This document shows positions 2,205 to 38,900 of a DNA stretch of 64,000 nt, piece by piece. Source of the DNA: Macrostomum lignano (lineage: Eukaryota); NCBI GenBank assembly GCA_002269645.1, contig NIVC01000099.1:682001-746000 (forward strand). Reading direction: 5' to 3'. The position numbers were made by a program, and so were the translations under genes. Positions within the stretch are counted from its first letter, which is position 1, and each line of letters starts with the position of its first letter. Below the pieces are notes generated by a model that searched no databases, was not told the origin of the DNA, and saw only the letters and a program-made list of their open reading frames with translations.

Positions 2205-2923
2205 CCACGACCCACTCCGTCAGTCCAGATGTACGCAGAAGGCAGAGAGCCCCCACCCCCAAACCACCAGTCCAGATGTACGCAGAAGGCAGAGAGCCCC
2301 CACCCCCAAACCACCAGTCCAGATGTACGCAGAAGGCAGAGAGCCCCCACCCCCAAACCACCAGTCCAGATGTACGCAGAAGGCAGAGAGCCCCCACCCC
2401 CAAACCACCAGTCCAGATGTACGCAGAAGGCAGAGAGCCCCCACCCCCAAACCACCAGTCCAGATGTACGCAGAAGACAGAGAGCCCCCACCCCCAATCC
2501 ACCAGTCCAGATGTACGCAGAAGACAGAGCCCCCACCCCACTTCTCCAGTCCAGATGTACGCAGAAGGCAGAGAGCCCCCACCCCCAAACCACCAGTCCA
2601 GATGTACGCAGAAGGCAGAGAGCCCCCACCCCCAAACCACCAGTCCAGATGTACGCAGAAGGCAGAGAGCCCCCACCCCAAACCACCAGTCCAGATGTAC
2701 GCAGAAGGCAGAGAGCCCCCACCCCCAAACCACCAGTCCAGATGTACGCAGAAGGCAGAGAGCCCCCACCCCCAATCCACCAGTCCAGATGTACGCAGAA
2801 GACAGAGCCCCCACCCCACTTCACCAGTCCAGATGTACGCAGAAGGCAGAGAGCCCCTACCTCACTCCGCCAGTCCAGATGTACGCAGAAGGCAGAGTCC
2901 CCACCCACTCCGCCAGTCCAGAT
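2205..2923. repeat. 47-bp minisatellite CAGTCCAGATGTACGCAGAAGGCAGAGAGCCCCCACCCCCAAACCAC, ~15 copies
   Basis: Period 47 (2221, 2268, ...); source of the ORFs at 2120-2971. Confidence 0.95.
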
Positions 2924-3281
2924 GTTGTTTTGTTGATTGCATGCTCTGCGCAGGTCTTTTCGGCTAAATGATCAACTGACTATTTTTGTTTGTTTTCTTG
3001 CGCATGTTTCCTGCTGTTATTTGATAGCAGAAAAGATTATAAGTTTCTTGTTTAGCTATTTTTTACGTTTTTGGTGCAACACTGCGCAACATTTGCACAC
3101 AATTTTTACGGTGCATTTTCGCATGCAATTAAGATTAGTGACACCGCAGTTTCGTGTCTGGAAAATTTAAACTCGTATTTGAATTCACTGAATATTGCCG
3201 CAGCTTGCAAGCTTGGATTTTCGCATGTTTTTTAAAAATATTATTATGGTTAAATTTCTGCCTAAAACTGACAATCATCCA

Positions 3282-3905
3282 TCGGACACCCAACTCGGAC
3301 ACTCATACACGGGACACCCCACTCGGAGACTCATTTACCGGATACCCCATTTGGACATTCATACACCGGACACCCACTCGGACACCCCACTCGGACACTC
3401 ACACCGGCCACCCCACTCGGAGACTCATTTACCGGACACCCCATTTGGACACTCATACACCGGACACCCCACTCGGACACCCTCTCGGACACTCATACAC
3501 CGGACACCCCACTCGGACACTCATTCACCGGACACGGACATCCTACTCGAACACTTATAGACCGGAAACCCCACTCGGACACTCATTTACCGGACACCCC
3601 ATTTGGACATTCGTACACCGGACACCCACTCGGACACTCATGCACCGGCCACCCCAATCGGAAACTTATTTACCGGACACCCCATTTGGACACTCATTCA
3701 CCGGACATCCTACTCGAACACTTATAGACCGGAAACCCCACTCGGACACTCATTTACCGGACACCCCACTCGCACACCCTCTCGGACACTCATTCACCGG
3801 ACATCCCAATCGAACACTTATAGACCGGAAACCCCACTCGGACACTCATTCACCGGACACCCCACTCGGACACTCATTCACCGGAAACCCCACTCGGACA
3901 CCCAT
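3282..3905. repeat. Compound minisatellite built on CCGGACACCCCACTCGGACACTCATTCA
   Basis: GGACAC core with several alternating variants and a higher-order block containing ACACTTATAGACCGGAAACCCC three times. Confidence 0.9.
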
Positions 3906-4445: not shown

Positions 4446-5050
4446 TGCATGAAGGATTCTGGGATTCTAGTTGGGGATTTGTGGATTGGGATTCTAGGTA
4501 GGGATTTAAGGATTATGATTCTAGCTAGGGATTCTGGGATTTTAGCTGGGGATTCTGGGATTCTAGCTAGGGATTCTGGGATTCTAGCTGGGGATTCTGG
4601 GAATCTAGTTAGGGATTCTGGGAATCTAGTTGGGAATTCTGAGATTCTAGTTGGGGATTCTGAGATTCTAGTTGGGGATTCTGAGATTCTAGTTGGGGAT
4701 TCTGGGATTCTAGTTGGGGATTCTGGGATTCTAGTTGGGGATTCTGGGAATCTAGTTGGGGATTCTGAGATTCTAGTTGGGGATTCTGAGATTCTAGTTG
4801 GGGATTCTGGGAATCTAGTTGGGGATTCTGGGAATCTAGTTAGGGATTCTGGGAATCTAGTTGGGGATTCTGGGAATCTAGTTGGGGATTCTGAGATTCT
4901 AGTTGGGGATTCTGAGATTCTAGTTGGGGATTCTGGGAATCTAGTTAGGGATTCTGGGAATCTAGTTGGGGATTCTGGGAATCTAGTTAGGGATTCTGGG
5001 AATCTAGTTAGGGATTCTGGGAATCTAGTTAGGGATTCTGAGATTCTAGC
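4446..5050. repeat. 21-bp minisatellite GGGATTCTG(A/G)GAATCTAGTT-, ~28 copies
   Basis: 7-aa period (DSGNLVG) in the ORF track. Confidence 0.92.
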
Positions 5051-5180
5051 TTGCATTCTACTCGTAAAACCGTTAAATCGATTCGCCATCTTCATAACTT
5101 GGCACTTTCTGCAATACGGTTAATTGCTTCTATTAAAAAAGTCAAATCCAAAAGCAGACGCAGCACCAGCAGAAGCAGCA

Positions 5181-8100
5181 ATGCGCAAGAAGCAGTCTTC
5201 CACGCGCCGAATGGCCGGCAGCGACGAAGACGACTTGGAGGCCACCGCGGCCGGCGAGCCTCCCAGCCCGCCGCCGAACGGCAACGGCGGCGCCGATGCG
5301 GGAGCAGAAGATTCGCAGGCAAAAGCAGCAGAAGGTGGAGAAGAAGCCGTACGAGAAGCAGAAGAGGCTGGGGCCAGAGAAGAATCTGCGGCGACGCCCG
5401 TCAGCACGAGGACTCGCGGCAGCAGCGGCGGCGGCGGCACGCACACCTCCCCGGTGTCGGCGCCCGGCATCTACGACACGGTGAAGTGCACCGCCTGCGG
5501 CAAGCGGGTGAACCCCTACAACGGCACCATGCAGCTGCACCCCATGCTCAGCGTGCTGGTCTGCCAGCGCTGCTACAAGTTTTATCGCACCGGCCAGTTT
5601 GACATCGACCACGACGGCAAGGAGAACCAGTGCCGCTGGTGCGGCGAGGGTGGCTCCCTGATCTGCTGCGACCGCTGCCAGCACTCCTTCTGCAAGTCCT
5701 GCATCCGCAGGAACCTCGGCCGCTCGGCGCTGCAAGGCGTTGAGGAGCTGCCCGATGATGCCGTCTGGAGCTGCTACATGTGCGACTCTGCGCCGCTGCT
5801 GGAACTGCAGGTGAGCTCGGCATTTCTCATCCTGGGCTCGGGTCAGCACTCTCTGCTTCAGCAACTAGCTCTCAGATCCTCATTTGCTAGGCCAGCCTCC
5901 CAGAGTGTCAGTTGCTGGGCCAATCTCCCAGAGTGTCAGTTGCTGGGCCAACCTCCCAGAGTGTCAGTTGCTGGGCCAACCTCCCAGAGTGTCAGTTGCT
6001 GGGCCAATCTCCCAGAGTGTTAGTTGCTGGGCCAACCTCCCAGAGTGTCAGTTGCTGGGCCAATATCCCAGAGTGTTAGTTGCTGGGCCAGCCTCCCAGA
6101 GTGTCAGTTGCTAGGCCAGCCTCCCAGAGTGTCAGTTGCTGGGCCAGCCTCCCAGAGTGTCAGTTGCTGGGCCAGCCTCCCAGTGTCAGTTGCTGGGCCA
6201 GCTTCCCAAGTCCCCAGTTGCTGGGCCAGCCTCCAAAGTCCCCAGTTGCTGGGCCAGCCTCCCAAGTCCCCAGTTGCTGGGCCAGCCTCCCAAGTCCCCA
6301 GTTGCTGGGCCAGCCTCCCAAGTCCCCAGTTGCTGGGCCAGCGTCCAAGTCCCCAGTTGCTGGGCCAGCCTCCCAAGTCCCCAGTTGCTGGGCCAGCGTC
6401 CAAGTCCCCAGTTGCTGGGCCGTCGCCCCTCTTTACAGTGATTCCCCAACAGCCAACTCAACTCTCCCTGCCCCACCCGCAGGCGGAGGCCCGGGTTGTC
6501 ATGCAGGCGGTGCGTGATAAGTACAGCACCGAGGCGGCGCGCAGCCGCAAGCAGCAACAGCACCAGCAGCTAAAACTGCAGCAGCAAAAGCAGCAGCAGC
6601 AGCAGAGGCTTCAGCAGCGCCAGGGGGCAGCTTCAGCAGCGCCAGCAGGCGGCTTCATGGGCCTGAAGCTGGACATGAGCTCGGTGCCCAGGCTGCCCGG
6701 CACCACAGCGGCGATGGCAACCACAGCCGGGGCGATGTCTGGCGGCCTCAGCAAGCAGCAGCAGCAGCAGCGCCAGCGGCAGCAGCTTCTCATGCAGCAG
6801 CAGCAGCGGTTCGCCCAGTCCGTGCCGCGGCTGCCGGCTGCCGCCGGCTCCTCCCAGTTGGCTCTGCAGCGCCAGCAGCAGCAGCAGCTTCAACAGCTGC
6901 AGAAATTGCAACAACAGCAGCAGCAGCAGCTGCAGCAGAGGCAGCGCGCAATGGCAGCAGCTGGCAGCAGTGCGGTGATGACGGAGCAGTGGTACAAGAA
7001 GAACGTCCGCATCGAGTCCATCCTGGCCGATATCGAGTCCGTGAACACTTATAACATTGGCCCAGCGCTCAATGCCACGGTCACCCTGCTGCAGGGCATG
7101 ATGCGCCAGTACAGCCGCCTGCTGCAGGATCTGGCCGCGGTCAGGTCAGTTCGCTGGCTGGGGTTTTTTTTGGGGAATTCTCTTGCTTGGCGGGATTTTA
7201 GTGAGATTTCCATGACGGTGGATTCTCTTTGATGAATTTCCATAGGAGGGTGGATTTTCCTTGCGGGGAATTTCCATAGGAGTGTTGATTCTCCTTGCCA
7301 TATGAGGGTAGAGTCTCCTTGTGGGGAATTTCCATAGGAGGGTGGATTTTCCTTGCGGGGAATTTCCATTGTGTCGTGTAGCTACCAGTATGTGCATGCA
7401 CTCAGTACGAGTACTAGTATTGATTTGTATTTGTACTTTCCTATTATTTCTTTCTCTATTATTATCTACGCAAGTTTGGCACGTTAGGTTTGAGTTATTG
7501 CTATTTGAGTTATGGCCAAATTGTGTACGCTTAAATTATGTCATCACTCTCGCGCACGTAGCATCGCTTTACAATATAAATACAGACATCAGAGCTTTGA
7601 TAGCTCTCTCGTAGTCTTCAACCACTTTAAACAAGCAGCATAGCTGATTTACCACACATAGGAGTGTTGATTCTCCTTGCCATGAGGGTAGAGTCTCCTT
7701 GTGGGGAATTTCCGAATTTCCATAGGAGGGTAGACTCTCCTTGCCATGAGGGTAGAGTCTCCTTGTGGGGAATTTCCATAGGAGTGTTGATTCTCCTTGC
7801 CATGAGGGTAGAGTCTCCTTGTGGGGAATTTCCATAGGAGGGTAGACTCTCCTTGCCATGAGGGTAGAGTCTCCTTGTGGGGAATTTCCATAGGAGTGTT
7901 GATTCTCCTTGCCATGAGGGTAGAGTCTCCTTGTGGGGAATTTCCGAATTTCCATAGGAGGGTAGACTCTCCTTGCCATGAGGGTAGAGTCTCCTTGTGG
8001 GGAATTTCCATAGGAGTGTTGATTCTCCTTGCCATGAGGGTAGAGTCTCCTTGTGGGGAATTCCCATAGGAGGGTGGATTCTCCTTGTGGGGAATTCCCA

Positions 8101-9841
8101 TAGGAGGGTTGGATTCTCCTTGCGGGGGAATTCCCATAGGAGGGTTGGATTCTCCTTGTGGGGAATTCCCATAGGAGGGTGGATTCTCCTTGTGGGGAAT
8201 TTCCATAGGAGGGCAGACTCTCCTTGCGGGGGAATTCCCATAGGAGAGTGGATTCTCCTTGTGAGGAATTTCCATAGGAGGGTGGATTCTCCTTGTGGGG
8301 AATTTCCATAGGAGTGTTGATTTTCCTTGTGGGCAATTTCCATAGGAGGGTGAATTCTCCTTACGGGGAATTTCCATAGGAGAGTGTATTCTCCTTGCGG
8401 GGAATTTCAATAGAGGGGTGAATTCCTGCAGGGAATTTCCATGCTAGGGCTTGCTCTCCTTTATGACTTTTTTCGAACGTTAAAAACTCAAAAGTAACTT
8501 CAAATATACAAAATTGACCTTTGATTGACTTAACCTGACCCCGCATAACCCCGTCTCCCCGAACACAGGACCAACCAGGACCGGGCCCAGGTGGTGTCCC
8601 GATTCAAGAGCGCCTACCGGATGCACCTGTTCCTGCGCCTCGGCAAGCTGCGCAGCCTCATTGCCGAGCAGGACCGCCACTCCGTGCGCAAGGCCGCGCC
8701 AGCCGGAGCCGCCGCCGCCACGCCGAAGCCGGCCGGCCTCTCCCTGGCCTCCGTGCTGCCGCAGTCCTCGGCGTCAACGATGGCTGCCGCGGCGGCGCTG
8801 CAGCTGCCTGGCACCGCCAGCAAGACAGTGATGGACGCGCAGGGCCAGGCGATCCCCATCGCCGAGCTGCTGCCCGAGCTGAACCGCAACATCCGGGAGA
8901 TGATCGAGCGGCAGAACCAGGCCCGCAGGGACTCCGAAGCCGCCGCCGCGGCTGCCGCGTCCGGCGTTGCCATTGTCAGCGGTGGCGAGTCGGTGGAAGC
9001 CGGCGGCGAAGGCGACATTGTTGTGCTGAGCGACGAGGAGGCCTCGTGCTCTTCCGGGGCGGACGGCATTGCGGAGCTTCTGGCGAAGCGGCGGCAGCGC
9101 GAGGCCGAGGCTTCCGCCGGCGCTGCGTCGGTCGCCACGTCGAAGTCGAGGAAGAAGAGCCAGCCGAGGAAGATCACCCTGCCCGCCACCAATCGGCGAA
9201 TCGCCCTCGGCGACGTTGACGACGAAGCCGAAGCTGGCAGCAACAGCAACGGCATCGGCGAGGACGCCGACGTCGACTACGGAAACGGCGCCGACGATTC
9301 GGCGATGCCACAGGTGGAGGCGATGAACGAAAATGGCGACGATGGGGCTGGCGAAGCGGCGTATGGCATGGAGGCCGACGCTGCTCCTGACGCTGCTCCC
9401 GGCGATGCTGGCGACGCTCCTAACGATGTTGGCGAAGCACTTGAAGATGTGGGCGAGGCTCCCGAGGATGTTGGTGAGGCTCCCGCCGATGTCGGCGAAG
9501 CTCCTGGCGACGCCAACAACGGCACGGAGGCTCCCACCAGCGATCGTGGCTCCGACGAGCCGTTCGACAGCGCCGACGCTGCCGCCGCGGATGTCGCCGC
9601 CGCGGTTGCCGCTGTAGCTGCGGCAGATGGCGACCAGTTCGAGCCGCTGTGGGCGACTCCGGGCGAGGAAGCTGGCCGGGGTGACAACGGGGATGGCGGC
9701 GGCTCCGTCAAGCGATGCCGCGCTGAAGATCCCGACGCAGCAGACGCCGATCAGGACGATGATGACGAGCCGGCGCACAAGCGGTCGCGGCCGCAGTCGC
9801 CCGGCAGTCTTGAGACGCCGCCTTCGTCCGTCACAGCTTGA
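5181..9841 (+). CDS. ATRX-like ADD (GATA-like + PHD zinc finger) protein without helicase domain, ~854 aa; exons 5181-5810, 6483-7144, 8569-9841
   Basis: Exon 1 encodes CTACGKRV..HPMLSVLVCQRCYKFY..DGKENQCRWCGEGGSLICCDRCQHSFCKSCIRRNLGR..WSCYMC, collinear with the ATRX ADD domain. Donor 5811 and acceptor 6482 (phase 0); donor 7145 and acceptor 8568 (phase 2) join the ORF-track frames. Downstream are poly-Q, a helical segment and an acidic low-complexity tail. ATG 5181 is assumed; an upstream exon is possible. Confidence 0.85.
5885..6420. repeat. 28-bp minisatellite GTTGCTGGGCCAGCCTCC(CAGAGTGTCA/CAAGTCCCCA), ADD gene intron 1
   Basis: Period 28; two unit types segregated into 5' and 3' halves. 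Confidence 0.92.
7235..8445. repeat. Minisatellite GGGGAATTTCCATAGGAG-..CTCCTT, ADD gene intron 2, interrupted by a unique AT-rich block at ~7370-7655
   Basis: ~34-bp units plus longer variants containing GCCATGAGGGTAGAGTCTCC. Confidence 0.9.
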
Positions 9842-9959
9842 GACAGTTGCCAGTAGCTTTTTGGCGTCTCCGACGCGGGACTGCTACTTGAAGTAGGATG
9901 CGCGCATATCAAATCGCAAATAGTGCTAAGTTTTCTATTAATAATGTTAAGTAAGCTGT

Positions 9960-11400
9960 TGCTAATCTAAACAATCAGGTCGAATGAATAGAATGGATTG
10001 CTAATCTAGCCAATCAGGTACAAAGGAATAGAATAAAATGCTAATCTAGCCAATCAGGTACGAAGGAATAGAATGGATTTCTAATCTAGCCAATCAGGTA
10101 CAAAGGAATGGAATTGATTGCTAATCTAGCCAATCAGGTACGAAGGAATAGAATGGATTGCTAATCTAACAATCTAGCCAATCAGGTACGAAGGAATGGA
10201 ATGGATTGCTAATCTAGCCAATCAGGTACGAAGGAATAGAATGGATTGCTAATCTAGCCAATCAGGTACAAAGGAATGGAATTGATTGCTAATCTAGCCA
10301 ATCAGGTACGAAGGAATAGAATCAATTGCTAATCTAACAATCTAGCCAATCAGGAGGTACGAAGGAATAGAATCAAATTGCTAATCTAACAATCTAGCAA
10401 ATCAGGTACGAAGGAATAGAATGGATTGCTAATCTAACAATCTAGCCAATCAGGTACAAATGAATAGAATGGATTGCTAATCTAACCATCTAGCCAATCA
10501 GGTACGAAGGAATGGAATGGATTGCTAATCTAGCCAATCAGGTACGAAGGAATAGAATGGATTGCTAATCTAGCCAATCAGGTACAAAGGAATGGAATTG
10601 ATTGCTAATCTAGCCAATCAGGTACGAAGGAATAGAATGGATTGCTAATCTAGCCAATCAGGTACAAAGGAATGGAATTGATTGCTAATCTAGCCAATCA
10701 GGTACGAAGGAATAGAATGGATTGCTAATCTAACAATCTAGCCAATCAGGTACGAAGGAATAGAATGGATTGCTAATCTAGCCAATCAGGTACAAAGGAA
10801 TAGAATGGATTGCTAATCTAGCCAATCAGGTAAAAAGGAATGGAATTGATTGCTAATCTAGCCAATCAGGTACGAAGGAATAGAATCAATTGCTAATCTA
10901 ACAATCTAGACAATCAGGTACGAAGGAATAGAATCAATTGCTAATCTAGCCAATCAGGTACAAAGGAATAGAATGGATTGCTAATCTAGCCAATCAGGTA
11001 CGAAGGAATGGAATGGATTGCTAATCTAGCCAATCAGGTACGAAGGAATGGAATGGATTGCTAATCTAGCCAATCAGGTACGAAGGAATGGAATGGATTG
11101 CTAATCTAGCCAATCAGGTACGAAGGAATGGAATGGATTGCTAGTCTAGCCAATCAGGTACGAATAAATAGAAAGGATTGCTAATCTAGCCAATCAGGTA
11201 CGAATGAATGGAATGGATTGCTAATCTAACAATCTAGCCAATCAGGTACGAAGGAATGGAATGGATTGCTAGTCTAGCCAATCAGGTACGAAGGAATGGA
11301 ATGGATTGCTAGTCTAGCCAATCAGGTACGAATGAATGGAATTGATTGCTAATCTAGCCAATCAGGTACGAATAAATAGAAAGGATTGCTAATCTAACCA
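9960..11400. repeat. ~40-48-bp minisatellite GCTAATCTAGCCAATCAGGTACGAAGGAATAGAATGGATT downstream of the ADD gene
   Basis: About 33 units; optional AACAATCT insert. Confidence 0.95.
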
Positions 11401-12574
11401 AAAGTTTGCTGAAATGCATCCTGAAACTTTGTTGGTTCTTTACATTCTGTATCTCGCCGCTGTCTTCTGCTTTGCAAAGGCGGTGTTTTATCCCCCAGCT
11501 AGTCCCCCAGTTGTATTCCCCCATTGGCATTCGTCTCATTTCGAAATCAAATTCCCTGCAGCTCCGGCCCCGTGTTTTATTCGCTTCATTGTTGCTATTA
11601 ATTTTGTTATTCACGGCTAGAATTTAGCCAGAAAACTCCCAGTGTAGTTGTGCCTACTCATAGTAGGCAGCGCGCGCGAAAATATCGCCTATTTGTGTTG
11701 CAATACGTGTGTGTCTGTGTATTTGGTCTCGCCCAATCAATCTATTTATACGGTAGTTTGTAATGCACCTGTACATGCGGTTTTATTTTCTCATCCTTCT
11801 ATTTTTCTGCGAATTCCCGCCCGCGTCCGATACGTAAAAACTGCTTTGCCTGTTTGCTGCTAATGTTAACAAACCGTTTTTATACACAATGCAGCACGAT
11901 TGTTTTAAACGCGTTTTTTATTGCATCAAACTTCTACTACTGTAAGTAGGCGCTGGCGGGCGCGCTTCGATTATTCTATAGTCCTATAATTTATTAGTAA
12001 TTAACTATTGTTAAATATTATTCAAACGGTTTTTCTGTTGTTACTTCCTACTATATTGTTGCACGCTACTTATTAACTACTGTAAGTAGCTTGCAATTCT
12101 AATTAAAAAAACAGCTTTGCTAGCTACTGCCTGCACGTGTCCTGCGGTTATCATAATATTTATTAATAATTTGTTCTTCTAAATGTGTTGTGCGCACCCT
12201 GTCGGAAATTGCTTTTTAATTTATTGCCCACTGATTAACTCGAGCGAATACCTGCATTGCTGAGCGAACGCTAAGTCTTAAACCACCTTAGTTTCAAATT
12301 AATACGTCTAATAATGTTGGATGTGACCTACGCTCTGGTCTGCATGTGAATTGAATCAACATAAACAAAGCATAAACTTGCTTTGAATGAGCAGATTTAA
12401 TTTTAGACCCTTTTGTCTGTTTCGTTTGCAAATAAATAAGCTAATTTAATGCTGAGCTTGCGCAGGCACTCCGAATGTCCAATGGCAATTCACCATCTTA
12501 ACTGTCCGCCTTTGTCTTTTGTGTTGCCTTTCTTCATTGCCTCATGGCCTGTGTCACTGACTGCGATCTTGTCC

Positions 12575-16309: not shown

Positions 16310-19300
16310 TCACATGATGCTGGTGGCCCTCGCACCCACGCGCCTGCTAGAGCTCATCTCCCTGGCAACGCTGACCGACCGGATCACAGTGCTGCTGCCG
16401 CGCCGGCTGGACATGGTGCGCTCGGCCAGGTCGGCCCGGTGCTCCGCCTCCTCGATCTGCTGCTGCGCCTTGCGGTACTTCGTCATGGCGATGGCCGAGA
16501 TTTCCTCCTGCAGAGGGGGCGGAGTGACAGCGGAAAGTCATAAACTTTGGCTCCAGGATCGCTATAGAGCCACCTGGGTGGATTTGTGAGTCAAATCGAA
16601 AGTCAACCCACAGCCAGCGAAGAGGCAAGCAGCCATGCCCAATCCCGACCTCTGAGCATACATGTTTGCAGGTACACGAGCACACAGCAGCCCCCTGTGA
16701 TCAAAAAAATCTGCGAGACGGATTGTTTCCAAGAAAAGTCTATTTTTGAAGGCACTTTCTAATCTGTTTCAGTTGCGGCCTTCACGAGTGCAGACATGTC
16801 CGAGTAGCTTTTAACAGCACTTGTAATTAGAAACAAAGCAACGCGGGGCCTCTGGTCGGCATCTTTGTTGAAATATTTGTCTAGAACATAGTGCACGACT
16901 TTCCAATTCCACGAGCATCCAGTGAACCCCGGCCCCGCATCGGCTTCCTCTATAGCTTTGATTCATTGGATTTGCATTAAAGAAATTCCAGTAAGAAAGG
17001 CAACCCGCAGGCATTGACATTGGCACGCATTGGCAGCTTGAGGGGGGTTAATTCAGTTCCGGTCGCAGTAAACAACAGTTGTTGCTACCGACAACTCCGC
17101 ATCCGCGTCGAACTCCACTTTGCTCGCAGATGCAGCCGCGCACGGCAGATCACAGTGAAGGGCATCGCATTGCGCGGCACTTGGCGATTTCCATAATTGG
17201 CGCTCCGACCAATAATGGGATCGTGGGGTATGGGGCGATGGGGCCGCCTCCAGCCTCCAGACAGGCAGGCATGCAGGCCGAATCAATACTGAATGCTGCG
17301 CCCGCATCCTCTCTTCTCCTCCCTGACATTTCCAAGCCGCATCAGGGGCGGGGGAGAGACTGGGGGAGCCGAGTGAGAGTGAAGCGGAGACGCACGGGCT
17401 GCACAGATCGAAGGCAAAGCGATGCGTCTTCGGATTTGCAGAAGAAGAAAACAGGAAACTGCAGCTGCAGAGCGGCTTCCGTGCGGACAGGATACATGGG
17501 GCTGGGGGGGGGGGGCGAAGGAAACAGCAAAACTGTGAGAGGCCAAAGAACCAAAGAATGAAATTTCCCGCTCCCGTTACCTCCTCCCTCGATCTTGCCA
17601 GAAAATCCAAGATCGAGGATCCACTTTGGTGATCCTCCATATCGTATCCCCCTGACCGCTACACGTGCATATGCTGCCCGATCCGTTTATCTTTCCAAAT
17701 TTTATTGGCCTCCCAAACACGCGTAGTTTATTATTCTCTGGCCAGTTTCTAAGTTTCTAACCATGGGGCATCCGCAATCACTCACCGACTCCTCAATCTG
17801 GCGCTTGTAGGTCTTGAGCTTCAGCTGGGTCTTGTCCAGCAGGTCCTGCAGCTCCATGTTCATCCTGCGCTCCTCCTCGGTCTGCGCCACCGCCTCCTTG
17901 GCCTGGCGCTCGAACTTGCGCGACGCCGCCTGAGCATCCTTGGCCTTGCGCTGCTCCTGGTCCAGCTCGGCCTCCAGGTCGCGAACCCGGCCCTGCAGCT
18001 TGCTCACCATCCGGCGGCCTTCGCGGGTGGCGAAAGCCTCCGCCTCCTCCAGCTTCACCGTGATCTCGCGAATCTCAACCTTGGCAATTGGGAAATCACA
18101 TATGGGGTTTAAATAAACTTATAAATGCTTATTTATTGAATCTGGCAAATATTTTAGGCTAGAAATATAAGTCTAATATTCTAAAATGGTGTTTAAATGT
18201 GCTTTAAAAATAAAACTAGAAAATAGCGTCACTTTGTTATTGTACACTGGTATTGCTAAAAATAGAGCTAGAATTGTTCTTCTACGCCAGTTTGGCTAAA
18301 AATAGAACCAGAACATAGCGTCACTTTGTTATTGCACACTTGTGTTGCTAAAAATAGAGCTAGAATTGTTATTCTACGCCAGTTTGGCTAAAAATAGAAC
18401 CAGAACATAGCGTCACTTTGTTATTGCACACTTGTGTTGCTAAAAATAGAGCTAGAATTGTTATTCTACGCCAGTTTGGCTAAAAATAGAACCAGAACAT
18501 AGCGTCACTTTGTTATTGCACACTTGTGTTGCTAAAAATAGAGCTAGAATTGTTATTCTACGCCAGTTTGGCTAAAAATAGAACCAGAACATAGCGTCAC
18601 TTTGTTATTGCACACTTGTGTTGCTAAAAATAGAGCTAGAATTGTTATTCTACGCCAGTTTGGCTAAAAATAGAAATATAACATAGCGTCATTTTGTTAT
18701 TTTACACTATCTTTGCTAAAAATACACTACCTCCAAAAAAATGGACCCCCGTCTTTCTGACTGTACATTTCGGGTTATAAAATCTTTCTTGGTTGAAATG
18801 CTTAATTCCGCTAATAAAGAGGCCCCCAGTCCCTCACCTCGAGCTGCTTGCGCAGGCTCTCCGCATTCTTGTAGTTCTCCTGCTCCAGCCGCAGCTCGTC
18901 GGCCAGGCGCTGCGCCTCCCCGGCCAGCCGGTTGGCCCGGTCGGCCTCGGCCAGCCGGCCGTTGTGCGCGTCATCGATCTCAGCCTGCGCGGCGGCCGCC
19001 TCCGCCTCCAGCCGGCGCTTGTCGTTGCTAAGCGACTGCATCTGCGCCTGCAGGTCGCCCAACCGTCCGGTGGCCTCCGCCGCCTCCGCCTCGGCCGCCT
19101 TCGCCTTCCGCTCGGCCGCCTCCTTCAGGCCGCGGGCCTCGTCGAGCTCACCCTGGGCGGCGGCGCGGCGCTTCTCGCAGGCGGCCAAGTTGCTCTGCGG
19201 CCGGTTGGGCGGGTTCAGATGGCGTTTAGTTACCGAGAATTCCGTTTATTTTGGACTACTGTTATGGCCCACCCCGCCGTCCATGTTTAACAGTCGCCCG

Positions 19301-22201
19301 GTTCAGCGATTTTAAAGTTGGATTTTATGATTTTTTAACTTTATGCCTCTTGCATAGTGTTATAATAAAGTTAGCTCTAATTAGGGTTTGGGTTATTAGG
19401 GTCAGAAGATAGCGAGTCAGCTAATGCAAACAGAAGGTCGGCTGAACTTACTGAACTCTATATCATGGCTCAGCAATAAATTCATCAATGAATCATCAAA
19501 ACCACTCACTTGAGTAGCATCGTGAGCCCGACGCTCCTCCTCAAGGTAGGTCTCGAGCTCGTGCACGCGGCTCTGCAGGCCCTTGTTGTCCTTGGCCAGA
19601 CCGGCGTTCATGCGACCCAGGTTGTCAATCTGGCCCTCCAGGTCGGCGGCCAGGGCCTCGTACTTCTTCTTGGTGCGGCTGATCTCGCCCTTGTACTTGG
19701 ACTCGATCTCGGTGATGGTCACGTGCAGCTCCTCGATGGTGCGCTGACTGGACTTGCGCAGGCTCTCCAGCTCGGCCTCCTTCTCGTTCAGCTTGGCCTC
19801 CAGCTCGGTCTTGAGCGAGGCGAGGGCCTGCGTGGTCTGCTGGTACTTCTGCTCCAGCTCGCGCAGCGCCTCCTCGGCGTCGCGCAGAGACGACGCCAGC
19901 GAGTCGCGCTCGGCCTGGAACTGGGAGCGCATGGCCTCGGAGTCGGTCAGGCGGCGGGTCAGGTCCCGGTTGGCGCTGTTGGCCTCCTTGAGCTGGCTGC
20001 TCAGCTGACCGTTCTCCCGCTCTAGGGCGGCTCGCTTGTCCTCGGCGCTCTGCAGGTCCTTCTTGAGCTTGGCGTTGTCCGCCTGCAGTCCCTGGTTGGT
20101 GGAGCTCAGCGAGGAGTTCTCAGACGAGAGCTCGTCGCAGCGGATGGTCAGCTGGTTGACGGTGCTCTCGGCCTGCTTGGCGCGCGAAGCCAACTCCTGG
20201 TTGGCCGCCTGCAGGGCGTCGATGTCGCCCTGAAGCTCCTTGATCTCAAGCGTGAGCTTCTGCTTGGTCTTCTCCAGGTTGCCGGCGCGGGTGCGCTCGC
20301 GCTCGGAGATGTCTTCCAGCTCCGTGATGCGGATGGTCAGCTTGCGCCTTTGGGGCGAGTGGGTATTGAAACAGGAACTGTTCTCAAGTTTGAGTTCGTA
20401 CTTGATAAATAGACTCTAAGCACCAACCTGATCTCCTCGTACTCCTCCAGCTTGACCGTCAACTCCCGGTCGAACTTGGACTTCAGGGAGGCCAGGTCGG
20501 CATTCAGCTTGGACACCTGTGTGCGCAGGTTGCCGGCGGCTTCGCTCTCCTCCTCGTACTTGGACTGCACAGCATAGTAGTCCTGCTGCAGGGTCATCAG
20601 CTGCGCCTGCAGGTTGTTGCGCGACTGCAAGCGGGCGGGGGAAGGGGAAGCTGGATTCGAATCTATCTTCTAAGAATTCCTGCAACAATAATCATCTTAC
20701 CCGCGTCTCCTCATCCAGACTCTTCTTGAGATCGTCCACCTGGCTCTGCAGCGACGACTTGGCCTTGCTCAGCGTGGCCGCCTGAGTCTCGTATTCGTGA
20801 GCTACGCGTTGCAGATCGACGTTCTCAGTCTGCAGACGGCTCTGAGCCTCGTGGAGGCTGCGCGACTGGGTCGTCAGCTCATCGTTCTGGCTGCGCAGCC
20901 GCGTCAGCTGGGCCTCGGCAGACTCGTACTTCGATTCGAAAGAGGCCTGGAAGGTTTTTGGGGATACAGACTCGGCTTCTGCTGCTTTTTTGATGAAGCG
21001 TCAAGGCAAAAGACCGCATATGCTGAAAGTCATGACATCACGAAGAGCATTAATGACGGCACTTGCGTGGGTGAGCCATTCACATGACGTTATACCAGTA
21101 GTCAAGTATTCTACGTAAGCTGAGTGTACATACCTGGTATGCCGTCGGCTCGTATTGAATACAACATTAGGCACAATAAAGACTGAATATCCAGCATAAT
21201 TTCCATGCAGCAGGCATTTTGCGTACCTTAGCCTTCATGGCCTGATCCACCTGGCTTGCCAGGTTGTCGATCTCAATCAGCAGGTTGGACTTCTCTTTCT
21301 CAGCGCGACTCTTCTGCTTGTTGGCGTTCTCCAGCTCGCCAGTCAGCTCCGTGATGGTCACCGTGTACTTCTTCTTCACCGTCTGCTCCAAGGACTCCAG
21401 CTGGCTGTTGGCGTTCTCCAGGTCTTTCTTGAGCTTCTGAACCTCCTGGTCTCGCCGGCGAAGCATCTCCTGGGCCTGGCTGCTCATGCCGCCGGCCTCG
21501 TCAAGACGCTCGTTGGCCGCGTCGAGCTGGTTGGCGTAGTCGTTCATGTTGCGCTCGGCCTGGACGAGTTGAGTTGGGCTCAAGAATTGAATTCCTTTTC
21601 TTCTTCAAAACTTCGCATCTTTAGGTAGACTAGATCGATAAAACAAAGTCTAGAAGTACATGCTGTACTTCATGGTCTGATATTGTTGAAATTTTTACGA
21701 CAACAGCTTTCACGAATGGTCTTGCTGATTAAATCTTGAGCCAGCATACTGTAGAAAATTTCCTGACACGCTGCCTCACAACGTACCCTACTGCGTCCAT
21801 CGCGCTCCATCTCCAGCAGATCTTCGAGCTCCTTGATGCGTGACTGAAAATTGGATTGAAGAGATGGATTCTTGTAAAGTTCACTGGTGTAAAAATAAGT
21901 AGAATAAATATTACAGCTACTTTATCATACTTTTATGGTTACTATTCGAATAGACCAGTGGTTATGCCACCTCGAAAAAACTGCCTCAAAAAGCGAAGAA
22001 CTTCAATTAGAAGCCATCTGATTTTAGCCTATAAAATCTTTTAGCGAGCAGTTTAGTAAATAGGACTAGCCAAGTGCCCCCCTGCGTGTGGCTCACCTCG
22101 AGGCGGTTCTGACTCGCCGGCGACAGGCCGCGGTAAATTCCGCGCGCCGAATAGGACGAAGAAGACGAGGCCTCCATGCGAGAGCTGCGACTCGAAGCCA
22201 T
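16310..22201 (-). CDS. Prm: Paramyosin, 874 aa; exons 22097-22201, 21787-21843, 21227-21559, 20701-20946, 20428-20624, 19510-20347, 18838-19194, 17786-18079, 16310-16507
   Basis: No motor domain. N-terminus [31 protein letters not shown]; rod with [26 protein letters not shown]; C-terminus [34 protein letters not shown]. These match flatworm paramyosin as recalled. All eight junctions are GT-AG with consistent phase. Confidence 0.95.
18210..18725. repeat. 92-bp tandem repeat (~5.5 copies) in paramyosin intron 7, two CTAAAAATAG motifs per unit
   Basis: AATAGAACC at 18301, 18393, 18485, 18577. Confidence 0.93.
18256..18673. promoter_or_regulatory. Cluster of ten perfect MEF2 consensus sites (CTAAAAATAG), candidate muscle enhancer
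   Basis: Ten exact matches to YTA(A/T)4TAR, first at 18256-18265 and last at 18664-18673. Function is inferred only. Confidence 0.4.
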
Positions 22202-23143
22202 GCCACCTGTGCTTATTGCAGTCGATTCGCTGCGGCTGTTTCAAAATTAGTAGATTAAATTAGACACGCAATTTGTTGCGATAGAACGGCAAAAAGCTAC
22301 TGGGACGATTGACTGAAACTAAGGGCTATTAGGAAATTTCGAAAAATCGGTTGCTACTAGGTCTGGTTGAAAAAATCACGAGAGAAACAAAAACCACAAT
22401 GAACCAGCGAAAGAGAGGCGGGCCCGGACACAGGAAAGGGCAACAGTGGCAGGGAAAAAACTGCTTCCACTTGAAACTCTCTCTCACTCTTGTTATTGGG
22501 CTTCGGCCGCCGTTAAATACTGCAGCGTCGATGCATCCCCTTTTCATTCTTCCCATTTAGCCTTTCCTCCCCGGCCTTCAATCCCCTGTTTTCCAGCAAA
22601 ACCGATGGATGGGCCGCGCTGCACAAGACAGGTTTTGCGCTCGCGCGCCCCGCGTGGTTGGCCTTTACGGACGGCCGGGCAACGCGAAAGGAATGCCGAA
22701 GTTTGCCGTCGCTGGGGGAGCGGCCCAGCAATTCTTTCCTGTCTAACTCCCAGTCTCGCATCCGCCATCGCTCCTCTTCAGTTCAGCTTCACTTTCTGTA
22801 CGCGCGAGGCAGCTAAAATTGGAACAGCGCGCGAAGGGCCGGCAGCGAGCGAGAAAATCTGCAGCTGGAAGAAGCAGACGGCGGGCCTGTTCGGCACCCC
22901 AAAGCTCCAAGTATTTTTTCGGGCCGCATCCCAGGAGCCGATCAATCGATAATTGCAAAGCCAGGTCAGGGCCGGGGCGGGGGAGGTCGCCCAGTCCAGT
23001 CAGTCAGGGTGCGAGATGGGAAATGCGAAACGGATAGGCGCGCAACTGCTGGCCTTACCTGAGGCAGATAACAACACGGATTTACAAGGCTGCGCATCGA
23101 GACTTTGCCAACTGGCGCACAAAAGCTTGTTTCATTAGGTGCT

Positions 23144-29900: not shown

Positions 29901-32900
29901 TATTTAATCTACTTGAGTTAGTAGGAGTTTGTAGCCGAGTGGTCAGAGCGTCGTACTTGCGACTTGAAGGTCGGGGGTTCGATTCGCAATCCCACTCAAA
30001 AAAAATTTGTGTCCTTGAGCGAGACACTTAACTCTGCATTGCTTCAGTTCACCCAGCTGTAAAATGGGTGCCAGCATAAGCTGGGGTAATTGAGGGTGGG
30101 TGTGGCGACCCCCCCCCAGACCTTGGACTGAACAGCCGTACGCCGCCTTCACCCGATGAAAACGGTACCCAGGCCAAGAAGCGCCCCGGAGTCAAAATGC
30201 ATGCTCAGCGACTCAGAAGTGATGCACTAACGATTTTAAAATGACGCTAAAGCGCTTCTTCTGCAACTTTTTTGGGCGAATCGTATGTGTCCATTACTCT
30301 GCCGCGATCAGTGGCTTGCCTATTTATGCCGCCGCGCGGTCCTTGCGCTCTCGCCACTCTTTGCGCTCAATTTTTTGAAAGGAAAAAAAATTGCTCGTAA
30401 CTTGTGGGGACTTCGTTTGCTGCTCCCCCCTTTAATGCTTCGTTGCGCTGTTGCCGCCTCGCTGCGCTTTGTTCGCCTCTTGGCCTGTCCATCCTCATGG
30501 TTTAGAGTCGTTTAGAATCACTCAGTTTTAGCCTATTGAACTCAAATTGCACTAACTAGCCTACCGAGTTAGTGGAAAGTTAAGCGCCAGCACAACGATT
30601 CTTGGGCGACTATTTCGCGACTCTTTTACGCTTCTACAACTCACGTGACGCGCTTGTGATGCAGCAGGCACCTCTCCGTCGCATTTGACGCGTTTGAGTC
30701 GTTAAAAAGTCACAAGAGTCGCCCCAGACGCGCTAGACTCACTAGAGAGTTGTTTGCAATAACTTTTTAGTGACTCTTGTCACGGTATCGTTTTCAACGG
30801 GTCAGATGCGCCGCGCAATAGCTGCTATCGGCTGCACATCTACCCAATTGGGATTGATTGATTGGTGTAATCAATCAGTATTATTACTATTGAGTTAGAA
30901 GAAAGTTGAGCGCCAACACAACTCTTGGATGACTTTTCTGCGACTCTTTTACGATTCTGCAACTCAGTCAACAGTCGCTCCAGTCACTAGTGAGCTGCCT
31001 GCCGACTTAGCTAGATTTTATTGATTGACCGCCAAGCTGACTGGTTGATAAGTAATCGATTAATCAATTTCTTGTTAAAGTCGGTCACTCACCACCTCCT
31101 GTATGAAGGAGATGAGCTCCATATTCCTTCGTTTGAGCTGGTCCACCTTGTCCTGGATGCGCATCACGTGCTGCTCGTAGACCCGCTCAAGCGGCTGGAA
31201 GGTGTGCTCGGCGTGCTGGGCGTCGAACAGGGCGCACTGGTGGCACACGGCCACCTGGCAGGTCTGGCAGTACACCGTCAGCCGCTCCTTGTGGCTGTCG
31301 CATCGGTCACTGCTGCGAGCATCACCAGGTGAGCCCTGTTGAGACTGAGTCTGGCGGCCCTGAGACACCTGCTGCTGCTGCTGCTGGCTTTGCAGCTGGT
31401 CCAGCTGGCTGGTTACCTCGTCTGCCCAGCGGCAGATGATCAGGTCCTGGACGTGAAGCGGCGACCTACGGACCCGGGTGTGTAGCAGTGGGGAATGGCT
31501 TGTGGAATCTGCAGACAGCACTGGGGAGGGTGGCGGTGTAGCCTGGTGGACTGGGGAGGGTGGCGGTGTAGCCTGGTGGATTGGGGAGGGTGGCAGTGAA
31601 GCCTGATGGACTGGGGAGGGTGGCAGTAAAGCCTGGTGGACTGGGGAGGGTGGCAGTGAAGCCTGGTGGACTGGGGAGGCTGGCAGTAAAGCCTGGTGGA
31701 CTGGGGAGGCTGGCAGTAAAGCCTGGTGGACTGGGGAGGGTGGCAGTGAAGCCTGATGGACTGGGGAGGGTGGCAGTGAAGCCTGATGGACTGGGGAGGG
31801 TGGCAGTAAAGCCTGGTGGACTGGGGAGGCTGGCAGTGAAGCCTGATGGACTGGGGAGGGTGGCAGTAAAGCCTGGTGGACTGGGGAGGGTGGCAGTAAA
31901 GCCTGATGGACTGGGGAGGGTGGCAGTAAAGCCTGATGGACTGGGGAGGGTGGCAGTAAAGCCTGGTGGACTGGGGAGGGTGGCAGTAAAGCCTGGTGGA
32001 CTGGGGAGGCTGGCAGTAAAGCCTGATGGACTGGGGAGGGTGGCAGTAAAGCCTGGTGGACTGGGGAGGCTGGCAGTAAAGCCTGGTGGACTGGGGAGGC
32101 TGGCAGTGAAGCCTGATGGACTGGGGAGGGTGGCAGTGAAGCCTGGTGGACTGGGGAGGGTGGCAGTGAAGCCTGGTGGACTGGGGAGGGTGGCAGTAAA
32201 GCCTGGTGGACTGGGGTTGGCAGCCACAGGAAGCATTGCAAGAGTCCAAACAGATTCTCACCGGCAATGCGGACACTGTGGCCGTTCAGACAGCCATCGC
32301 TAAAAGTACAAAAGTGAAGCAACGGCTTAAATTAAAGGTTTAAAGCAGAAAAGCAACTTGCACTGCAGCTGAACTGATATTACAGCTTTTGCTCACCCGA
32401 ATGCAGACTGAGCAGCACAGTTTTGAGCACTGGGGACACAGCCTGGCATCTCTGAGTCGCTCCATGCAAATAAAGCAGCGAAACACTTCAGCCAGACTCT
32501 GGTGGGTAAAGATTGATGGAGTTGGATTGTGGGCTGATAGATAAAATAAGCAATGAATTGGAATACAAATTTATAGACTTCCTTTAACCCTATATTGGAT
32601 TATAAAGCCTTCACATTGAGTATTCCTGAACTGCTATAAAAGGCTTTTTGCTTGGCTGCTTTATCGTCTTTGTAATACCATTAAAGAATTCCTTGGTTTA
32701 GATTACAAACGAAAATTTATAGATATCTTAGCTTATATCTTATAAAAATTGGTTGGCAATTATACTCGTATAAAAGCTATAAAGATAAAAGAACATCATT
32801 TTAGCAAACTTGAAAATATAGATTTAGGCCTAATCCACTGCACTAAAAGTTACAAGTTTTTATAGTGCATCAATAATATTATAGATTAAATCAAAATTAT

Positions 32901-35900: not shown

Positions 35901-38900
35901 CTACCTGCCTTGCGACAATAAAAGACCTTTTTTTACAACATAGTCGAGTCACGAGACAAGAGAATATAATGGTTAATACGGGACGGTTACGGGCTATCTA
36001 TATTATATTATGAGAAATTGAGATCGTTAAACCGAAAATAGAAAAAAAAAAATTTTTTAATTTAATTTCTTATTTTTAAAACAAAACAAACCTAAAAAGT
36101 AAGCAAATGGCAAAAACAAAGATAAAAAGGAAAAGGAAAGTATTTTATTTTATTTTTTATGTTTTAGTAGAATGCAGTGTTACATTAGATAGAACAGTAA
36201 ATAGTGTACTGTAACAAGTAACGACTTACATTGTTACATGGGATCGCCACAAGGGTAACGCTGCATGTGGCGCGGCGCCTGCCGCGCCGCGCCGCCATGC
36301 GCCGGTGTCCTCTGGTGTGCGCCGTTGTGCGCTGCTGTGCGCTGTTGTGGCGCGCCGCTCCTTGAGAGTGCCATCCTTAGCAAACAACTCGCTTGCGGGT
36401 TGTTCGTTGACTTCGAAGGAGCATTTGACAATGTCCTCTTCCGCTCCTTCAGAAATTCTCTTTCCCGCAGGAATGTAAGACACAGCATTGTTCGCTGGAT
36501 TTATTTTATGATCCGCAAAAGGTTTGTGACATCCACACTTATGGGCGTTACCCTCACCCGGGCGGTGATGAAAGGCGGCCCGCAAGGTGGCGTGCTAACT
36601 CCACTTCTCTGGAATCTCGTCATGGACGAACTTCTAACCGCTGACATTCCCAGCAGTATCACCAGGGCGGGCTACGCCGATGACGTTGCCGCGGTCGTCA
36701 GCGGACCCGACCCCGCCACTCTGCGCAACCTGATGCAGCAATTCGCCGACAAGGCGGCCGACTGGGCTACACAGCATGGCCTAAAAATCAGCGTCACTAA
36801 GACTGTCGCTGTCGTTTTCACCAAGCGCCGTAAGTGGGAGATGAAAAACCTCACTGTCTATGGCAGAAACATCCCCTTCAAGAAGGAGGTCAAATACCTC
36901 GGTGTGACGCTAACGCATGACCTGCGCTGGACGAAGCACCTTGATAACGTCATCGGTCGGGCAAAACGCTGCTTTGCCCAGCTGCGCAGAGCCATCGGGC
37001 CGACTTGGGGCCTCTCGCCTAGAACGGTCCGTTGGATTTATACCGGCATCATCCGGCCCAGTATCACATACGCGAGTCTCATCTGGACTAGCGTGCTGGA
37101 GCAGAAGGCCGCCCGTCAGCGGCTGTACCAGCTTCAGGGCAGCATTTGCCGTGCCATCACAGGTGCGTACCCGTCCACCCCTTACGAGGGGCTGAACACT
37201 ATCCTTAACCTACCTCCGCGTCACCTATTTATTAGGGCGGAGGCTATGAAGTCTGCCTCCCGGCTTATCAGAGATAAAACGTTAAATAACGCGCCCTCTG
37301 GCTTTATGCCAATGAAAACATTAATCCCGCATATGGACTTTGTCCGCCGCGACCTTAACAACATCCACATGGACCTGGGCAATGTGGATAGTCGACCTCC
37401 CGCCCTCAACATCAGGAGGGGCTTCAAGACCGCCATCCCTGGCCGAGACAACATTCCGCTGGATGTCGGTGTGAACCGGCGCAGCCAGGGCATTCACTGC
37501 TTCACCGACGGCTCGCTGTTCAACGGCCGCGCTGGAGCGGGTATTGCCATTTTCCACGAGGGTAAGATGCTTCTCCAGGAAAGTCTGCACCTCGGTGAGA
37601 ACACCTCAGTTTTCCAAGCTGAAATTTGCGCCATTGAGCAGTGTGCCCAGCAACTGTTTCAGGCGAACATTAATAATTTTGACATTAATTTCTACACTGA
37701 TAGCCAAGCTGCTATTAAGGCCTTAACCACTGAGAATATCTCCGCTGCTACAGTATCTCAATGCCACCGCAGTGTGCAATCTCTCTCAGTCCTTAACAGG
37801 ATTAGAATTATCTGGACACCTGGTCACAGCAACATCCTGGGCAACGAGCTCGCGGACTCTCTCGCCAAGGAGGGCAGCAACCCAGACGGCAACCACCGTC
37901 TGATGAGGCTACCCACCCCCAGGTCGCAAGTCACCCGCCATATCAACAGGTGGCTCCATCAGCAGCACCAGCTCCACTGGAACAGCTGCACCGAGTACAG
38001 GCAGAGCCGCTCTGCCATGCCTAACCTGAACAGGAAAGTCTCTGATTATCTGATTTCGCTTAACAGAACCGACCTCAGGGAGATGTGCATGGTCCTAACC
38101 GGCCACGGATTCTTCCAGAGACATATATCGTTGCAAACCGGTTGCCCTCCCACCTGTCCCTTCTGTGGCATAGGAGAGGAGACCGCGGAGCATCACGTCA
38201 CCTTCTGCCCTTACTTCAACAAGGCGCGGCACAAATACCTCGGCCACCCCCAGCGGATGGACGAGCTGACCACCGCGGACAATATCCGAGACCTCCGCGC
38301 CTTCGTCCGGGACTCCGGCCGGATGAGGGTCGCCGATGCCTCCACTGCGGACCTGCCGACTACTGGCGGGGACTGGGCGCACCCCCAAGGCTAATCCTTG
38401 TGCTCTTTTACCTTGGGGTTGCGATAGGGGCCTCGCGGCCTATTCGCGGCGCCTGCGCCCCCCGTCAGTAGTAAGTAAGTAAGTAAGGTGGCAGAGTGTG
38501 CGCCGGAACAAATTTTGGCCTCTCCCAAAATTGTGCGCCGTGCGCCGACACAAAAACCCTCGTGTGCGCCGTTGTGCGCCCGCCACTACCTGCCTTGCGA
38601 CAATAAAAGACCTTTTTTTACAACATAGTCGAGTCACGAGACAAGAGAATATAATGGTTAATACGGGACGGTTACGGGCTATCTATATTATATTATGAGA
38701 AATTGAGATCGTTAAACCGAAAATAGAAATTTAAAAATTTTTTAATTTAATTTCTTATTTTTAAAACAAAACAAACCTAAAAAGTAAGCAAATGGCAAAA
38801 ACAAAGATAAAAAGGAAAAGGAAAGTATTTTATTTTATTTTTTATGTTTTAGTAGAATGCAGTGTTACATTAGATAGAACAGTAAATAGTGTACTGTAAC

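Follow-up and report, generated by a model that had tools for sequence, protein, structure and literature searches.

Can the two halves of ATRX be encoded apart? In ATRX a histone reader, the ADD domain, is joined to an SNF2 motor, and each of these parts is a site where disease mutations cluster. We analysed a 64,000-nucleotide stretch of the flatworm Macrostomum lignano (GenBank assembly GCA_002269645.1, contig NIVC01000099.1, positions 682,001 to 746,000 of the forward strand; hereafter the window), in which the gene at 5181-9841 (+) encodes an ATRX-type ADD domain and ends without a helicase. An earlier reading made from the letters alone (the sequence-only reading) had proposed either an independent ATRX fission or an ADD-only paralog in a flatworm lineage. 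We consider it likely that this is a functional gene encoding the reader half of ATRX, that it arose from a fused ADD+SNF2 gene in the macrostomorph lineage independently of insects, and that it has since been duplicated.

A stand-alone ADD gene without a helicase

Three exons form one open frame of 854 codons with a TGA at 9839-9841. The features of the gene, in the coordinates of the window, are listed here.

5140-5141 (+), AG that follows an A/T-rich tract and is probably the acceptor for spliced-leader trans-splicing, which would start the mRNA body at 5142
5181-5810 (+), exon 1, amino acids 1-210: ATG at 5181, MRKKQ start, Ala/Gly/Glu-rich N-terminal region and most of the ADD domain
5811-6482 (+), intron 1, GT-AG (GTGAGC...CCGCAG), mostly 28-bp minisatellite
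6483-7144 (+), exon 2, amino acids 211-430 plus 2 nucleotides: end of the ADD domain, Gln-rich linker and first half of the hairpin
7145-8568 (+), intron 2, GT-AG (GTCAGT...ACACAG), mostly 34/56-bp minisatellites
8569-9841 (+), exon 3, amino acids 431-854 plus the stop: second half of the hairpin, Ala-rich region, SUMO-interaction-motif (SIM)-like motif, basic patches and acidic tail
5463-6518 (+), ADD domain, amino acids 95-222, coding 5463-5810 and 6483-6518, split by intron 1
6519-6986 (+), low-complexity linker, 31% Gln, amino acids 223-378
6990-8671 (+), helical hairpin, amino acids 380-465, coding 6990-7144 and 8569-8671, split by intron 2
9017-9040 (+), IVVLSDEE, SIM-like: hydrophobic core, then an acidic/Ser run
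9086-9175 (+), basic patches KRRQRE ... SRKKSQPRK, possibly resembling a nuclear localization signal
9194-9838 (+), acidic Ala/Asp/Gly/Glu tail with DVGEAP-type repeats, an EPLW motif and a C-terminal KRSR (9779-9790)

Each element named in the sequence-only reading, from the ADD domain with its CIRRNLG through poly-Q, helical segment and acidic tail to the stop at 9841, is present in this 854-residue model. The last part of the protein (residues 601-854) is 21% Ala, 14% Asp and 9% Glu.

The reader is of the ATRX type. Pfam ADD_ATRX (PF17981) matched residues 99-142 with 46.8 bits against a cut-off of 25.7, and phmmer against the PDB ranked the human ATRX ADD domain best (E 7.7e-36), while the ADD domains of DNMT3A/3B/3L reached only about 1e-5 to 1e-3 (DNMT3B about 1e-5; DNMT3A about 1.6e-5 to 1e-4). 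The domain has the ADD build of a GATA-like C4 finger, a PHD-like finger and a C-terminal helix. All 12 zinc cysteines are kept (human C171, 174, 197, 200, 220, 223, 232, 235, 240, 243, 265 and 268), as are H189, Y204, D212, D214, Q219, R246 and G249 at their human positions. We take the H3K9me3/unmodified-K4 pocket of human ATRX to consist of Y203, Y204, D207, I209, D212, D214, D217, E218 and Q219; here Y204, D212, D214 and Q219 are the same, and Y203F, I209F and D217E are conservative changes. The ADD domain is probably intact in structure, and reading of the H3 tail is predicted.

The motor is absent. Pfam found no SNF2-related ATPase or Helicase_C match in the protein, and when the SNF2/Helicase_C regions from two trematode ATRX proteins were compared with the 64-kb window by tblastn, no match reached E<=1. 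An ATRX-SNF2 hidden Markov model (HMM), which we built from 33 ATRX helicases and ran on six-frame open stretches of at least 25 residues over the entire 64 kb, reached no better than E 0.63, a noise-level score; the same scan recovers both halves of the hairpin. The absence of helicase exons from the window, first noted in the sequence-only reading, was thus borne out by both searches. So was the identity of the next gene, a convergent paramyosin-like gene of about nine exons (about 16313-22240, minus strand) with Myosin_tail_1 matches and paramyosin-like termini, whose 3' end lies ~6.5 kb from the ADD gene stop codon. The helicase-less form is the only product that the locus can encode.

Copies, paralogs and a second flatworm with the same architecture

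The closest database match of the window protein is BOX15_Mlig031735g2 (P0001) of M. lignano, with 97% identity, and its model is contiguous across both exon junctions of the window gene. A second protein, BOX15_Mlig023686g3 (P0002; 758 amino acids), is 44% identical and has ADD as its sole Pfam domain. M. lignano holds these two diverged ADD-only paralogs in more than one copy each. P0001 lies downstream of a Shugoshin_C gene, and P0002 is flanked by kinase/ubiquitin-like genes on one side and by an ankyrin-repeat gene on the other; P0002 was found on two contigs, which fits the partial genome duplication carried by the sequenced M. lignano line (PMC5730564).

The GenBank annotation of M. lignano derives from RNA-seq assemblies with gene boundaries set by spliced-leader and poly(A) reads (PMC5730564), and the ADD-only models P0001 and P0002 are therefore transcript-based. 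The model of the 97% copy (L003, position 10001) begins at the base equivalent to window 5142. In the window, the AG at 5140-5141 is preceded by TATTAAAAA and looks like a spliced-leader trans-splice acceptor; the Mlig_3_7 annotation splits transcripts at such sites (PMC5730564), and the 'g2' suffix of the sister copy's locus tag suggests that the gene is second in a polycistronic unit.

Comparison of the window copy with L003 revealed 24 synonymous and 20 non-synonymous differences (dS 0.040, dN 0.010), a dN/dS of 0.26, and the window gene is under purifying selection. Between the paralogs the hairpin is 68% identical, against 44% overall. The window copy lacks two motifs, DGTVVVQP before the ADD domain and xIDLT after the hairpin, that P0002, L004 (below) and the neodermatan ATRX proteins checked all keep, and its poly-Q and its acidic repeats of the DVGEAP type have expanded; because of these losses and gains we regard it as the more derived paralog. 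The linker (residues 223-378) is poorly kept in P0002 and L004.

A metagenome contig of a second flatworm (ENA ERZ25070786; L004) encodes, after removal of one short intron, a protein that shares about 35-40% identity with that of the window. Its order is DGTVVVQP, ADD, hairpin, FIDLT, IVLLSDDDE, acidic tail, DPLW, PKKSRLSS and stop, and its hairpin, LHLFLRLGKLRTLIAEE, is almost identical to that of M. lignano. The C-terminal end is like that of the window protein (DPLW vs EPLW; acidic tail plus K(R/K)SR), and tblastn found no helicase in the remaining 3.2 kb past the stop. Since L004 shares both architecture and C-terminal end, the helicase-less form predates the divergence of L004 and M. lignano. 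The tree described below unites the two M. lignano paralogs with 100% bootstrap support, and hence they duplicated after that divergence.

At E<=1, tblastn likewise found no helicase in the fetched parts of the P0002 locus, the 97% copy, L004 or a Helobdella locus; sequence covered 3' of the gene was about 10 kb (L001, L002), about 5 kb (L003) and 3.2 kb (L004). The leech ADD model at the Helobdella robusta locus (KB097304.1; L005) is a 226-residue partial, and helicase-like sequence was not found in the 10 kb 3' of its ADD exons.

Might the gene simply continue into helicase exons on another scaffold or past the window, its end being an artefact of annotation or assembly? ADD-only entries are often split models. 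In the snail Candidula, the ADD (P0042) and helicase (P0173) models are both on contigs of a reported 308,578 bp; in the fish Aldrovandia, the two ATRX halves (P0027/P0183) carry the adjacent locus tags G00281220 and G00281210; and in the tapeworm Echinococcus (P0160/P0162), 504-residue models stand beside a 1935-residue model. These entries are split fused ATRX genes, and surveys of protein databases consequently over-count ADD-only genes. At the M. lignano locus this explanation does not fit, because the stop is internal to an exon of 1.27 kb, the 54 kb downstream (which hold the minisatellite and the convergent paramyosin gene) are free of SNF2 sequence, the models come from transcripts supported by poly(A) and spliced-leader reads (PMC5730564), and the C-terminal end is kept in L004. 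Both paralogs, moreover, end without a helicase in differing gene neighbourhoods. We therefore judge an artefact very unlikely.

In databases these genes appear only as "hypothetical protein" or auto-named "DNA helicase" entries. Three ADD-only M. lignano proteins in UniProt (A0A1I8J8C3, A0A1I8JC05 and A0A1I8IHU3; P0003, P0004 and P0014) are called 'DNA helicase' without having a helicase domain, a misleading label that was apparently assigned automatically.

A hairpin shared with fused flatworm ATRX

Where did a stand-alone reader come from? We searched a profile of the region from the ADD domain to the helical segment against 1.8 billion representative proteins, and then built an HMM of the helical segment from the macrostomorph sequences. 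The segment, a hairpin of ~86 residues with the signature F-x-S-x-Y-R-x-H-L-F-x-R-L, lies ~150-250 residues past the ADD domain. Its HMM matched, at E values of 1e-11 to 1e-13, the ATRX proteins of Paragonimus heterotremus (2202 amino acids), Opisthorchis felineus (2115), Calicophoron daubneyi (2223) and Heterobilharzia (1472). Iteration added Clonorchis, Echinococcus canadensis ATRX (1935 amino acids) and short Fasciola and Echinococcus models, and saturated at 21 sequences, all flatworm or flatworm-like. The iterated HMM matched none of about 125 non-flatworm ADD proteins, 26 of them scored as ADD+SNF2 ATRX.

The long matched proteins are fused or were scored as such. By Pfam, those of Paragonimus, Opisthorchis and Heterobilharzia carry ADD and SNF2-rel_dom in one chain, the first two with Helicase_C as well; Calicophoron was SNF2-positive by the ATRX-helicase HMM built here, and Clonorchis and E. 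canadensis were counted as full ATRX by length and by the source name "ATP-dependent helicase ATRX". The full-length neodermatan proteins (such as KAF5400000.1 of P. heterotremus, TGZ66706.1 of O. felineus and A0A915EWX5 of E. canadensis) share with the window protein MRKKQ, the ADD domain and the hairpin at equal spacing after it, but go on through ~700-800 more low-complexity residues to SNF2-rel_dom and Helicase_C, whereas the window protein ends after its acidic tail. An MR(K/T)KQ start is common to the window protein (MRKKQ), its paralog and trematode ATRX (Paragonimus, Opisthorchis and Fasciola), and P0002, L004 and the neodermatan proteins checked have DGTxVVxP before the ADD domain and (V/T/S/F)IDLT after the hairpin. 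Because hairpin and MRKKQ start match fused neodermatan ATRX, the locus corresponds to the N-terminal, non-catalytic part of flatworm ATRX. The hairpin, which the sequence-only reading had seen as a ~90-residue helical segment, is by these sequence matches an ancestral flatworm-ATRX module.

One further protein, P0091 (1855 amino acids), is a full-length ATRX whose helicase is closest to molluscs. It has LPDGTVVVQPEP upstream of the ADD domain, and DGTVVVQP is therefore older than flatworms. After the ADD domain P0091 carries VDNLRLALKDIRAKAKMLQMELEKYE, a stretch similar to the first helix of the flatworm hairpin but not detected by the hairpin HMM.

AlphaFold2, run with nine flatworm sequences, modelled a pair of short helices and, after them, a long antiparallel hairpin made of two helices (query residues 30-60 and 64-103 out of 108) with a mean predicted local distance difference test score of 73.5 and 87-95 in the core. 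Foldseek with this model found nothing significant in the PDB, the best matches being the N-terminal dimerisation hairpins of ING3/4/5 (E about 1.4-3, template-modelling score about 0.4), and a profile search with the hairpin had no match among PDB sequences. The likeness to ING proteins, in which a PHD-type reader is joined to a helical-hairpin oligomerisation or docking module, is only an analogy. Farther on, IVVLSDEE has counterparts at the same position in the paralog (VVVLSDDDD) and L004 (IVLLSDDDE) and may be a SUMO-interacting motif by its fit to the published consensus. A strict PxVxL HP1 motif was not found.

Probable independence from insect dADD1

A stand-alone ATRX-type ADD protein without an ATPase is already known from insects. 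In that case the fission has been placed within Insecta, with the fused gene ancestral (PMC4249797), and in the working model dADD1 is an H3K9me3 reader that binds the separate remodeler XNP and HP1a (PMC4249797, PMC10671109, PMC4083088). Drosophila dADD1 (CG8290) and other insect ADD-only proteins have low-complexity and acidic regions, as the window protein does. They differ in their separate origin, in lacking the flatworm hairpin and in that the window protein contains no MADF domain by Pfam; and while dADD1 works with a helicase-only XNP/dATRX, a partner in M. lignano can only be conjectured.

A single old protostome fission, inherited by insects and Macrostomum alike, would make the window gene a dADD1 ortholog. 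The layout of an Aedes dADD1-like protein (P0006) speaks for this, with its N-terminal ADD domain, Q-rich region, 'V(I/V)xLxSDDED' motif and acidic tail. In BLASTP of this protein against P0002, however, the ADD domain alone aligned, and we accordingly dropped a hairpin common to dADD1 as a candidate. In a neighbour-joining tree of ADD domains, the insect ADD-only proteins grouped in 100% of bootstraps and Macrostomum joined them in 1%, so that the phylogeny, too, sets the gene apart from dADD1. Together with the hairpin and MRKKQ, which tie the gene to fused neodermatan ATRX, and with the dating of the insect fission (above), these results make shared descent from one ancient fission hardly credible.

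The same tree joined Macrostomum with L004 in 64% of bootstraps and the neodermatans in 61%. Since its deep nodes are weak, a flatworm origin rests mainly on the hairpin and MRKKQ, plus the two motifs in the paralog and L004, and not on the tree.

The helicase half

If the reader came from a fused ATRX, does M. lignano still have the motor? In the ADD-profile search, which was exhaustive over the representatives, the M. lignano matches were all ADD-only. The searched set included two independent M. lignano proteomes (GenBank; UniProt/WormBase ParaSite), which may be incomplete, and we take the result as moderate evidence, at the level of database sequences, against a second, full-length M. lignano ATRX. 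A query with the 144-residue ADD domain alone returned 10 candidates and missed self-matches, short queries being unsuited to that index. In the profile search, the macrostomorph-type matches were followed by Nematostella, a helminth model and neodermatan sequences. The Nematostella protein (EDO44497.1; P0015) has two identical ADD domains and the helminth model (P0016) a repeated ADD fragment at its C-terminus; these duplications are probably assembly or annotation artefacts.

A full-length ADD+SNF2 ATRX might nevertheless exist elsewhere in the genome, with the ADD-only genes as 3'-truncated duplicates, a hard-wired equivalent of the helicase-less mammalian isoform ATRXt (PMC13074095). Duplication is rampant in the M. 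lignano genome (PMC5730564), which holds two ADD-only paralogs and near-identical copies, and the GenBank annotation discarded transcripts overlapping repeats (PMC5730564), so that such a gene could be absent from databases. Against this stand the solely ADD-only M. lignano proteins among the 1.8 billion representatives, both proteomes included, and we consider such truncation unlikely.

The sequence-only proposal thus stands in part. The gene derives from ATRX in a flatworm lineage, apart from dADD1, but a strict "fission" is unproven, because the ADD-profile search and the best 120 of 1300 helicase matches yielded no M. lignano protein that is a full-length ATRX or a helicase-only ATRX/XNP; a trans-acting partner is therefore likewise a conjecture. 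Supplements of the M. lignano transcriptome and genome papers contained, among the rows listed, just one uninformative mention of ATRX, in a Gene Ontology table.

The planarian Dugesia japonica has an ATRX-family product that likewise carries one half of ATRX, in this case the opposite one. DjXnp (Q868M6; P0172; 1076 amino acids) begins MAEPP and has a short Ser/Lys-rich N-terminus, SNF2 and Helicase_C, and no ADD domain; its helicase is closest to trematode ATRX (45%). The ATRX halves may be separate in triclads or more widely in free-living flatworms, or the cDNA may be 5'-truncated. Two other candidates were set aside: the helicase-only ENA contig L006, which is not a flatworm helicase but a bdelloid rotifer sequence (78% to Adineta), and L007, which is unrelated.

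Evidence against a functional reader half

Several findings weigh against the reading that we favour. The counterpart search for the motor, with the Paragonimus SNF2 region, returned no M. lignano protein among the best 120 of 1300 matches, all of them at most 1313 amino acids long. Flatworm monophyly in the ADD tree reached just 22%. An HMM of the neodermatan ATRX middle region showed no significant similarity to the macrostomorph C-terminal halves, which share short motifs only. In the ADD domain, D207G and E218N depart from the human histone pocket. The transcript-derived models cover the 97% copy and the 44% paralog and not the exact window copy. Finally, L003 carries a 1-bp deletion (about 13546, equivalent to window about 9536) that frameshifts its acidic tail over the last ~100 codons and accounts for the aberrant C-terminus of P0001; the deletion may be genuine, or it may stem from an error in long-read assembly.

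This frameshift, together with the two short motifs lost and the low-complexity repeats expanded in the window copy, is what could be expected of a non-functional relic decaying after loss of the helicase. Such decay is most improbable for a gene whose 854-codon frame is intact over three exons, whose dN/dS is 0.26 and whose zinc ligands are all present, and for which the hairpin is better conserved between paralogs than the rest and transcript-based models exist.

Possible function and significance

What might a reader do without its motor? We infer histone binding, partners and a nuclear role for the protein. Its ADD domain would dock on H3 tails with K4 unmethylated and K9 trimethylated, and the hairpin, SIM-like and acidic motifs would recruit partners. 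The likeliest of these would be an ATPase of the ATRX/XNP type, encoded by its own gene and working in trans, much as XNP and dADD1 work together in Drosophila (PMC4249797, PMC10671109); SUMOylated heterochromatin proteins are alternative candidates. The protein could also act without a motor, like mammalian ATRXt, a helicase-less isoform that is reported to be found in heterochromatin and to mirror ATRX interactions (PMC13074095). ATRXt is likewise an N-terminal ATRX product with an ADD domain and no SNF2 motor, but it is an alternative transcript of a full gene, whereas the window locus has no downstream SNF2 exons to skip. More tentatively, and as one possibility that we would not put first, the reader may be permanently uncoupled in macrostomorphs, the hairpin either docking a helicase-only XNP in trans or serving an autonomous, SUMO-dependent heterochromatin scaffold.

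In the literature searched, natural separation of reader and motor is described just for insects (dADD1/XNP), and neither ATRX nor ADD is mentioned for Macrostomum or for the evolution of flatworms. The finding is modestly novel: the separation itself is known, and what is new is a flatworm case that probably arose independently and has a conserved hairpin specific to its lineage. An independent separation in an early-branching flatworm would mean that the ATRX halves are evolutionarily separable modules. The previously unnamed hairpin, present in flatworm ATRX including that of parasitic flukes and tapeworms, is a candidate partner-binding element. In M. lignano, RNA interference and transgenesis work and stem cells are accessible in vivo. 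The gene offers a convergent test case in such an animal and, if our reading is true, a second natural system in which to part reader from remodeler functions.

Other features of the window

Minisatellite arrays with units of 20-56 bp, some with higher-order periods, occupy 130-1463, 2221-3905, 4517-5049, 5880-6421, 7657-8425 and 9959-11401, and are dense upstream of the gene, in both introns and directly after the stop codon; the last of them, a 40-bp minisatellite of 1.4 kb, begins ~120 bp past the TGA. Beyond the paramyosin-like gene lie further open reading frames (ORFs), one per line.

31075-32322 (-), B-box zinc-finger ORF
36265-38394 (+), retroelement with an intact 709-residue ORF containing reverse transcriptase and RNase H domains
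50981-52357 (+), fn3 ORF

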